Origin: Pavona decussata
Lineage: Eukaryota
Length of the DNA stretch: 64,000 nt
Reading direction: 5' to 3'
NCBI GenBank assembly: GCA_977016875.1
Contig: CDRNST010000122.1
Span: 2,170,001-2,234,000, forward strand
Positions 32,701-35,700 of this stretch are shown here, piece by piece (positions within the stretch are counted from its first letter, which is position 1; each line of letters opens with the position of its first letter). The translations under genes and the position numbers were made by a program. The notes under the pieces are model-generated. The model did not search any database. It saw nothing but the letters and a program-made list of their open reading frames with translations, and was not told the DNA's origin.

Positions 32701-35700
32701 GTGGTTGCATTGTTTGAAAATAATATGTGAATTTGTTTGTTTTGGCACATTGGGTTGATGCTGTTTTGATTTGTTCATTGGCAAGCACTCAATCAGATGC
32801 ACGCCTGGCCATATCTGTTTATGATGAGTTATTTTATTGATGGTTCAAGTATATTATGAATTTCGAATTATTTTCATAGTTTCATTGGTTACGAACTCTT
32901 CAGAAATATGTTTAAACTTTGATTCCTTTGTTAACAGCAACAGCAACTTCATCAGCAAGGCCTTCAAGGTTTACATGCTCACCCGCCCACAATACCACTG
33001 CCACACCCTGGAGCGACACCCCCACAACTACCACCAGGTGCAACGTCAGGACTGCTTGCCTTGGGTAACTTGACTGTTCAACCTCCACATCTACCCATGA
33101 TGAAACCAGAAGAAAAAGGTTAGCAGCTACTGCTTGCACTTTGTAAAACTGTCAATGAATAAATGAGTAAACAAATAAACAAATCAATAAAAAGTTGCCG
33201 TGCAGAACTAGTTTCGTGAATTGCCCTGTTCAATTTTTTTAAAATTTTTACTTCCGGGGGCAAGGATTCTCTTTGCCTCCTTACTTTAGTCTTCCATTTG
33301 CTGATATATGATTGAATATATTTGCTGGTATTTTACTTGACGTCAATGATCCTTATTTTGACTCATGTTGTTATTTTTTTCTTCTCTTTTTTCATGTGCT
33401 GCCTCCTTCCTTAGATGCTATGGTAGGTAGATGTTTTTATTTACTTTACATTTAATTTGTCAGTTTCTTTTGAAAGTTTGCTATAACCAAGTATATTTTA
33501 TTATAGTAAAGTGAAGTACTTTGTACCATGTGAAGTACATTCTCGTCTCTTGATCCCATCTTTATCGGCAAATGTGGTTCAAGATCATCGTACTCTTTGC
33601 AGTTAAAAAGAGCCATTTCGTGGACTTTCTGTTAACTAAAGGTTATTGTATGTTTTTGATCAGAACTCATTATCACCTCTTGGGCCAATGAGAGAAAAAT
33701 ACCGAGCCTCTGACCTGTCATCCCATGGAAGTGACGACGGACATGTGGACACACAGAGGGAAAGAGACAGAGATCGTGACAGGGAAAGAGAGAGGGAGAG
33801 GGAAAGAGAACGTGAGCGAGAGAGGGAACGCGACAGGGACAGAGATCGAGATCGTGACAGAGAAAGGCATGTGAATGGTGAGTATGAGGCCTGCAATGCT
33901 GGATACATATCACACTCAGGCGGCTTGACAGTTTTGGCTTAATCCAATGAATTCATATTATAGAAACACAACATGATAGTGTACATAAACTTTTGAAAGC
34001 AAAATTTACAGATCTATAACACCTACTTTTACTTTTAATTAACAGTGACCAAATTTTGTTTTGAAGGAACAAAGAGCAACAGCAAGAGAAAAAGAGATGA
34101 CAAAGATTCTGGGGTAAGTACAGTACATGTAAAGCTGAATGATTCTTGATAGTGTCTAACAATAAAATATTCTCCATGAGGCATAAAAGGATGTATCATT
34201 TAATGTCATGACTTGTTTTTCATTGCTCCAGAATCACATTTTCTTTCTTGTTGAGAGTTTAAAAGTTTGTTGATGCTGACTCCATCTCTTGTCAGTGGGC
34301 ACTCATAACTGTCTTCATTCTATTGGCATGCTGTTTAGTTGTCCTGAGGTACCACTGGATCACTTAAATTAAATGCTGAAGTTAACAATATTATTTTTGA
34401 TTCTCAGAAAGGAAAGTGATACATTTTGGCTGACATTTTAAAAGTTGTGAAGAAGATTCAGATGTTGAATGAAAAACTCCCCATTTATATAATATTATTT
34501 TATTTTCCTTCCACTATTGTAAGGAAAGTGATGCAGAAAAAAGTGATGGTGACTTGGTAGTGGATGTCTCAAATGAGGTAGGTAGATAAGGTTGGCCCAG
34601 CTCACTTTATCTCACTCTACAAATGGTCATAAAGTGCCACAAGATGTGTGTGATATCGTATGCAAATTTTTCAGATACAGTCTCGTCATCCCCCTCCTTT
34701 ATTCCTCTCAAATGTACCAGTAGCTGCCAATAGGGCATTTTCACTATGGCGTCATTTGACTACAACTACCAGAATCCTTCAGTTGTTTGTTTTCTCATGC
34801 TAATTAGAGCTATTGTTCTTCGCTCACCACTGGGATTACAAAATTTGAATTCGAAAAGGAAAACAAAATGAATTCTGGTAGTTGTAGTCAAATGACGCCA
34901 TCATGAAAATGGCCTATTTTTCTACCTTCAGGCGATGATTTGTAGCGCCTAGTTTCCGTCAGATCCTGTGGACTTTAATCTTTCTACCCACTAGCCCTGT
35001 TATGTTGTCTGCTTCTACAAAACAATTGAGAGAACTTCTAATTTTTGCGTGCATCTTAAAGGGCTGAAGCCTGTAATATAGGTTTCGTTGTAGTTTTGCT
35101 GTCATAAATGTATATCAGTTTCTTTTTTCAGTTGTCATGTACAGTACTGTGAATATTAAATGGGTTTACTGTTTGTTTCCCAGGATGCCAGTTCACCAGC
35201 CAGAGTTGAGAATGGACCTGACTCACCTCCTTTAAATGAAAAGAAAGTTCGAAAGGATTCTGGATCTCCCACCAACCCCTCGTCATCATCATCCACACCA
35301 TCATCAAAACATCCCAAGGTACGTCAGTCTCTGGATTCTCTAGATTTGGAAAATATCCATACTAATTAACCCCAAGGAGGGTTGCTGGTAAAATTCAAGG
35401 GGGGAGGGGTGTCTCAAAAGTCTATGTTTTTGAAGGAAAGCATGAAACTAATCTGCAAGTTACAGGAAGGGTGTCAGTTAAAATATCCCTCAGTGGGGGA
35501 GGAGGGGCATTGATATCTACTGGAACAACACATTTCTGTCTGCACAAGTTGTAATTGTATCATTTTTGCTGGATTTCTTACAGCCAGATAGCAAACCTGC
35601 ACTTTCATCATCAGAGGGCAGTTCCTCAGGAAGAAAAAGCCCATCAAGATCATCACCATCTGTAAAAACACCAGTTGGTGAGTAATGTTGCAATTTCTCG

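Follow-up and report, generated by a model that had tools for sequence, protein, structure and literature searches.

The Groucho/TLE gene on the plus strand of the 64-kb window (the whole stretch of DNA that was analysed) contains a microexon of 8 nt, ATGCTATG, at the boundary between the GP and CcN regions. It was confirmed that this microexon is real and that it is present in the mRNA of every run examined. Very probably, it is a constitutively included and evolutionarily old exon of the only Groucho/TLE gene of this genome. The microexon is required for phase bridging, because the preceding exon (exon A) ends in phase 1 and the following exon (exon B) starts in phase 0. The 8 bases (5 in some relatives) would bridge the phase-1 exon to the phase-0 exon, as two nucleotides and two codons, and a full-length co-repressor with the Q, GP, CcN, SP and WD40 regions would be possible only with the microexon spliced in. 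The coordinates of the features are listed in Table 1.

Table 1. Features of the Groucho/TLE gene around the microexon, in positions of the 64-kb window
Feature	Position	Strand	Evidence
Q-domain (TLE_N) exons of the same gene	23862..27840	+	PF03920 matches exon by exon
GP-domain exon A, 181 nt, phase 0 in / phase 1 out	32938..33118	+	contigs end or join exactly there, 4 runs
Conserved element TCTTTTTTCATGTGCTGC in the intron, 13-30 nt before the microexon	33385..33402	+	BLAST against orthologous introns
8-nt microexon ATGCTATG	33415..33422	+	transcript contigs of 4 runs, AG/GT flanks, conservation
Donor GTAGGT (used), overlapping a second GT at +4 (GTAGAT, 33427-33432)	33423..33432	+	contig joints
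Exon B, 214 nt, phase 0 in, RD/RE repeat inside	33664..33877	+	RNA contigs, frame check, NSLSP conservation
TGA met on skipping of the microexon or use of the +4 donor	33711..33713	+	direct-join translation, frame check
CcN exon, 47 nt	34067..34113	+	RNA joints, frame check
CcN exon, 54 nt	34524..34577	+	RNA joints, frame check
SP-region and first WD-region exons	35184-35318, 35584-35677, 35994-36069, 36312-36399, 36493-~36763	+	GT..AG RNA joints, 4 runs

Gene organization and reading frame at the GP/CcN boundary

The exons were searched singly by reference, and the frame was verified exon by exon with the carried phases. The exon peptides 26714-26806 and 27757-27840 were found above the cut-off for TLE_N (PF03920), and five exon-level matches cover profile positions 1-107 of this domain. 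At the other end of the gene, exon 38050-38370 gave a WD40 match (E 1.4e-16), and more TLE-like WD exons were identified among the open reading frames. Between them, exon-by-exon translation revealed a P/Q-rich GP region, followed by CcN and by an S/P-rich region. The CcN stretches consist of a basic cluster and acidic S/D residues, which we take to resemble the vertebrate CcN. In the 602-Mb assembly, all TLE_N matches fall within this one gene, and a separate AES-like locus was not detected; both statements refer to an exon-level search, the result of which is a lower bound. Groucho therefore appears to be single-copy in this genome.

The translation of exon A begins with QQQLHQQ, and its 3' end, GAA AAA G, is followed by the donor GTTAGC, which leaves the exon in phase 1. 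Exon B opens with AAC TCA TTA (NSLSP...) in phase 0, and its last base, 33877, is given by the RNA joints. The two phases are as described in the original prediction. The RD/RE dipeptide repeat of exon B (33755-33867) was masked as a repeat.

Together with the G carried over from exon A, ATGCTATG encodes D-A-M. Inclusion of the microexon leaves the nine RNA-defined exons that follow it open, with recognisable CcN, SP and WD sequences; after its omission, every later exon is full of stops. The direct join of 33118 to 33664 was confirmed by translation to give a frame restricted to Q and GP that ends at the predicted TGA, and the tandem donor at +4 is likewise present and leads into the same frameshift. 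For the product of skipping, a length of about 199 amino acids, as originally proposed, is plausible by exon-by-exon counting, in which exon 1 was not located. From the TGA to the end of exon B there are 164 nt, and more than eight junctions follow. By the usual rule, an RNA is an NMD target if its stop precedes an exon junction by more than about 50 nt. The hypothetical skipped RNA would thus be an NMD target by this rule, since its stop lies far upstream of many junctions.

Within the 545-nt intron between exons A and B, 16 AG..GT candidates were found which have a length of 2 mod 3 and are devoid of an in-frame stop. Given this number of candidates, the sequence alone is weak evidence for the microexon, and the RNA is decisive. 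The 15 other bridging candidates were rejected, having no strong pyrimidine tract and no counterpart in the RNA.

It had also been stated that no alternative acceptor near exon B restores the phase. This does not hold for the sequence, where the phase-compatible AG 33693-33694 (exon start 33695) would give the in-frame join ...EEK-E-KYRASD, but it does hold for the contigs listed, none of which uses this AG. A minor isoform joining 33118 to 33695, without DAM and the ten residues after it and with the full-length frame kept, is conceivable from the AG|AAAAA present at this place and from the AG|AA AAA arrangement found also in the related loci L001 and L003. It is, however, very improbable: the 33118/33695 joint is not listed in any of the 4 runs, the pyrimidine tract at this AG is poor, and the AG itself follows from conserved Glu-Lys codons. 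Moreover, NSLSP is invariant across all aligned loci and recurs in the rest, which speaks for 33664 as the normal acceptor and for NSLSP being normally translated.

The microexon in transcript contigs

A search of public runs identified 14 runs containing 17-32% of the sampled words, which is exon-only-like, and 4 DNA-like runs containing 72-97%. Four RNA-like runs, from 4 studies and 3 samples, were aligned to positions 31000-36900 of the window in the form of assembled contigs. The contigs carry the label 'RNA? (a guess)', and contigs of this kind lose rare variants and carry no information on inclusion ratio, tissue or stage. The contigs of the four runs skip nine GT..AG introns, and because of these many skips they were taken as spliced transcripts. 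The upstream loose end of the contigs at exon A, ...AATGCTATAATTGG, matches the TLE_N exon 27757-27840.

In each of the four runs, one contig was shown to link 33118 to 33663 via the letters ATGCTAT. Position 33663, the G of the acceptor AG, equals the eighth letter, and the mRNA therefore reads AAAAAG-ATGCTATG-AACTC. Since the mRNA passes from ...CTATG directly to AACTC, the first GT of the tandem donor is the one used. In the 64-kb window, ATGCTATG has a single plus-strand copy, at 33415-33422, flanked by AG and GT. The diagnostic junction strings are …GAAGAAAAAG-ATGCTATG-AACTCATT… for inclusion, …GAAGAAAAAG-AACTCATT… for skipping and …ATGCTATGGTAG-AACTCATT… for the +4 donor. The predicted junction from 33118 through ATGCTATG to 33664 was recovered in all four runs, and no different bridging exon was seen. 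Among the joints listed for the 4 runs, no other joint leaves 33118, and the depth is zero in both intron bins covering 33167-33560 in all of them. Neither a skipped (33118/33664) nor a +4-donor contig is listed in the 4 runs, in contigs which can hide rare or NMD-degraded isoforms, and none of their contigs ends or frameshifts after the GP exon.

The evidence consists of assembled contigs and not of raw reads, so the eight letters could in principle stem from an assembly or alignment error, the true transcript using other splice sites. Such an origin is extremely unlikely, as the contigs of 4 runs (3 samples), assembled independently of one another, contain the same eight letters, as these letters have a unique AG/GT-flanked genomic copy in the right intron, and as the arrangement is kept in 13 other loci.

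Other observations were made on the same contigs. In the intronic segment 34727-34920, the summed depth reaches 1000-3600, with 10-25 contigs per run, many variants and many loose ends; the pattern resembles that of a short element, highly repeated and widely transcribed, which lies within this TLE intron. In three of the four runs, the large upstream intron (31000-32940) is covered by contigs with a depth of about 5, compared to 80-140 for the exons, and these contigs have about 4% mismatches and small indels; none of them lies over the introns flanking the microexon. Their source could be pre-mRNA, or carried-over genomic DNA of another allele or individual. In 32985-33078 and 36345-36723, the RNA runs differ from the reference at many third-position SNPs, and X5 has several allelic contigs, which suggests high heterozygosity or pooled individuals.

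Related loci and splice signals

Protein searches with the GP exon and exon B (50% representatives and 90% clusters) returned only open reading frame fragments on eukaryotic genomic contigs, and the GP-exon search of both sets returned no annotated full-length TLE protein. One match to the GP exon, P0006 (780 aa), was rejected as an unrelated repeat protein. From the fragment contigs, and from one metagenome scan with an alignment of exon B peptides as the query, 13 orthologous loci with introns were obtained. L001, L007 and L008 are derived from one ENA assembly and L002, L003 and L021 from other ENA assemblies, L009 and L016-L019 are JGI loci, L010 is from Logan, and L020 is also among the 13.

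The comparison of orthologous introns showed the microexon to be conserved. Exon B opens with NSLSP in phase 0 in each locus, and exon A, wherever the related contigs extend that far, has the phase-1 end …K(E/D)(E/D)K G|GT. In the genomic sequence of 13 of 13 related loci, a phase-equivalent microexon was identified in the same intron, with a length of 2 mod 3 and the end ATG|GTRAG. Its length is 8 nt in ten of the loci and 5 nt in three. The 8-nt form encodes DGM in nine cases, namely as ATGGCATG in seven loci, as ATGGAATG in L002 and as ATGGTATG in L021, and EGM in L020, where it reads AGGGGATG. A 5-nt exon CAATG, which would encode AM, is inferred for the three more distant loci (L003:1376-1380, L009:2539-2543 and L010:1334-1338) from its setting AG|CAATG|GTRAGT in the same phase. 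Upstream of it, TTTCATGT-like motifs are present in L009 and L010. A length of 8 or 5 nt, never a multiple of 3, is, judged from the sequences, what a constitutive frame-keeping exon would need.

The conservation has to be seen against the divergence of these loci. In seven loci, the identity to the window at third codon positions is 0.31-0.62, being about 0.6 for L001, L007 and L008 and 0.31-0.52 for L002, L003, L009 and L010; with an identity of only 0.31-0.52, silent sites in the latter four are near saturation. The introns of the related loci are otherwise unalignable. A MAFFT alignment of four introns misplaced the microexon of the window and was discarded in favour of local BLAST and splice-site-anchored alignment. 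The RD/RE repeat of exon B differs widely between the relatives: L001, L007, L008 and L021 share a long version with the window, L003, L009 and L010 have a short one, L002 has none, and in L020 the repeat precedes the KFRASD motif.

A different organization was identified in L004-L006, three loci of another lineage, which have no intron at this place and carry GP and CcN in one exon (L004:473-1183, L005 and L006:250-993). At the equivalent place, L004 and L005 read KEEK-DST-LRESPLPP. Because GP and CcN share a single exon in these loci, the segment matching the microexon is a coding sequence of variable length elsewhere.

In the window, the microexon is flanked upstream by ...CCTTCCTTAG / TCTTTTTTCATGTGCTGCCTCCTTCCTTAG and downstream by GTAGGTAG. 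The strong pyrimidine tract that had been predicted was found, with a pyrimidine content of 0.89 at the acceptor compared to 0.55-0.71 in nine other acceptors of the gene. The AG-free zone measures 123 nt, compared to 19-60 nt at the other acceptors of the gene. The donor of the microexon, ATG|GTAGGT, is good and that of exon A, GTTAGC, is weak, and the introns on the two sides have 296 and 241 nt.

The element TCTTTTTTCATGTGCTGC matches the L001 and L008 introns at 18 of 18 positions and at the same offset (local BLAST, E 4e-5), and it is the sole significant similarity between the intron of the window and the orthologous introns. It holds a branch-point-like TTCAT, with the A 21 nt from the acceptor, and UGC repeats within the pyrimidine tract; two UGC motifs are located not more than 42 nt upstream of the acceptor. 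TTTCATGTG-like motifs were identified upstream of the microexon in most related loci. From its sequence, TCTTTTTTCATGTGCTGC may combine a branch point and a UGC-rich enhancer. The intron 3' of the microexon donor shows no conservation.

From these signals, a route by which so small an exon is recognized can be proposed. Recognition is probably secured by the short flanking introns, which would favour intron definition, and it is probably aided by the strongest pyrimidine tract of the gene together with the long AG-free zone, as well as by the good donor and the conserved TCTTTTTTCATGTGCTGC. Regulated exons, too, can have an extended AG-free zone and a conserved intron stretch before them.

Comparison to known microexons and short Groucho proteins

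Microexons of animal genes are exons of about 3-30 nt. Like constitutive animal microexons, the TLE microexon is tiny, has canonical AG/GT borders with a very strong pyrimidine tract and donor, has a conserved stretch shortly before its 3' splice site, and has kept its position and phase in distant relatives. It differs in being at the small end of the range (8 or 5 nt) and in being of non-3n length and obligatory for the frame, and not a modular insert. Bilaterian neural microexons which depend on SRRM4/nSR100 carry UGC motifs near their 3' splice sites. Here, the 42 nt before the acceptor were found to hold two to three UGC motifs in the window and in 10 of the 12 related loci scored. In contrast to SRRM4/nSR100 microexons, the TLE microexon is non-3n, three related loci are without UGC there, and its host appears to be non-bilaterian.

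The original prediction went further and proposed a regulated switch, in which skipping of the microexon or use of the +4 donor would give rise to a Q+GP protein that resembles AES/TLE5 and modulates the long form, or else to an NMD target and so to a lower TLE dose. Vertebrate AES/TLE5 (Grg5) has a Q+GP-only architecture. The hypothetical skip product would share this architecture, keeping the Q and GP domains only, and would have about the same length. AES has a locus of its own and does not arise from a long TLE gene by splicing (PMC2997355). In the mouse, Q+GP short forms, namely Grg1-S and other truncated products, are made by alternative splicing of long TLE/Grg genes (PMC3698143, PMC2997355), and the proposed switch would fall into the same category, with one long Groucho gene giving rise to a Q+GP short form. 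The mouse isoforms are, however, observed cDNAs, whereas the gene of the window shows long-form junctions only.

A switch would have several features of the locus in its favour. Skipping necessarily leads to a frameshift and to a stop that comes far ahead of more than eight exon junctions; as in AS-NMD, the loss of a non-3n exon would leave many junctions more than 50 nt behind the stop. TLE_N is confined to one locus of the genome, the exon-level search having detected no AES-like gene beside it, and the long AG-free zone with the conserved element before the microexon would be in keeping with regulation. A skipped form with an early stop could be removed by NMD and hence be under-represented at steady state. 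Against this, all four transcript assemblies show inclusion alone, which is a weak test, since contigs drop rare variants; no short transcript and no unproductive isoform were seen among them. The +4 donor is specific to this genome: it occurs in 0 of the 13 related loci, where the donor is GTGAGT, GTAAGT or GTAAGA. In the 8 loci examined for it, the frameshifted tail following GP has 11-26 residues and is unconserved, and the position of its stop in exon B ranges from 33 to 78 nt. The microexon length, 8 or 5 nt and never a multiple of 3, and the intron 3' of the donor, being without conservation, likewise speak against the switch, and no conserved 'poison' feature was found. A regulated long/short switch or NMD dose control is for these reasons unlikely, and the proposal stands as unproven rather than refuted. 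We likewise consider it improbable that, in an animal with a single Groucho and no AES, skipping by way of the UGC-rich element sets the dose through NMD or yields a Q+GP antagonist. In the literature, no described TLE/Groucho microexon and no cnidarian short Groucho were found.

A built-in long/short Groucho switch is only a possibility; if true, it would represent an equivalent of the vertebrate TLE/AES pair that is based on splicing and is of pre-bilaterian origin. As a constitutive frame-keeping exon, the TLE microexon is a fresh example of an already known feature type, useful for annotation and not surprising. Models of this Groucho/TLE gene or of its relatives which lack the exon of 8 nt (or 5 nt) will lose the frame or be cut short behind the GP domain, and the arrangement of pyrimidine tract-TTTCATGTGCTGC-...AG|nnnnnATG|GTRAGT provides a signature by which the exon can be found. 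The microexon is also a clear case of an obligatory exon of very small size that has persisted in lineages with near-saturated synonymous sites, and the short conserved intronic element upstream of it is a testable signal for microexon definition in a non-bilaterian.
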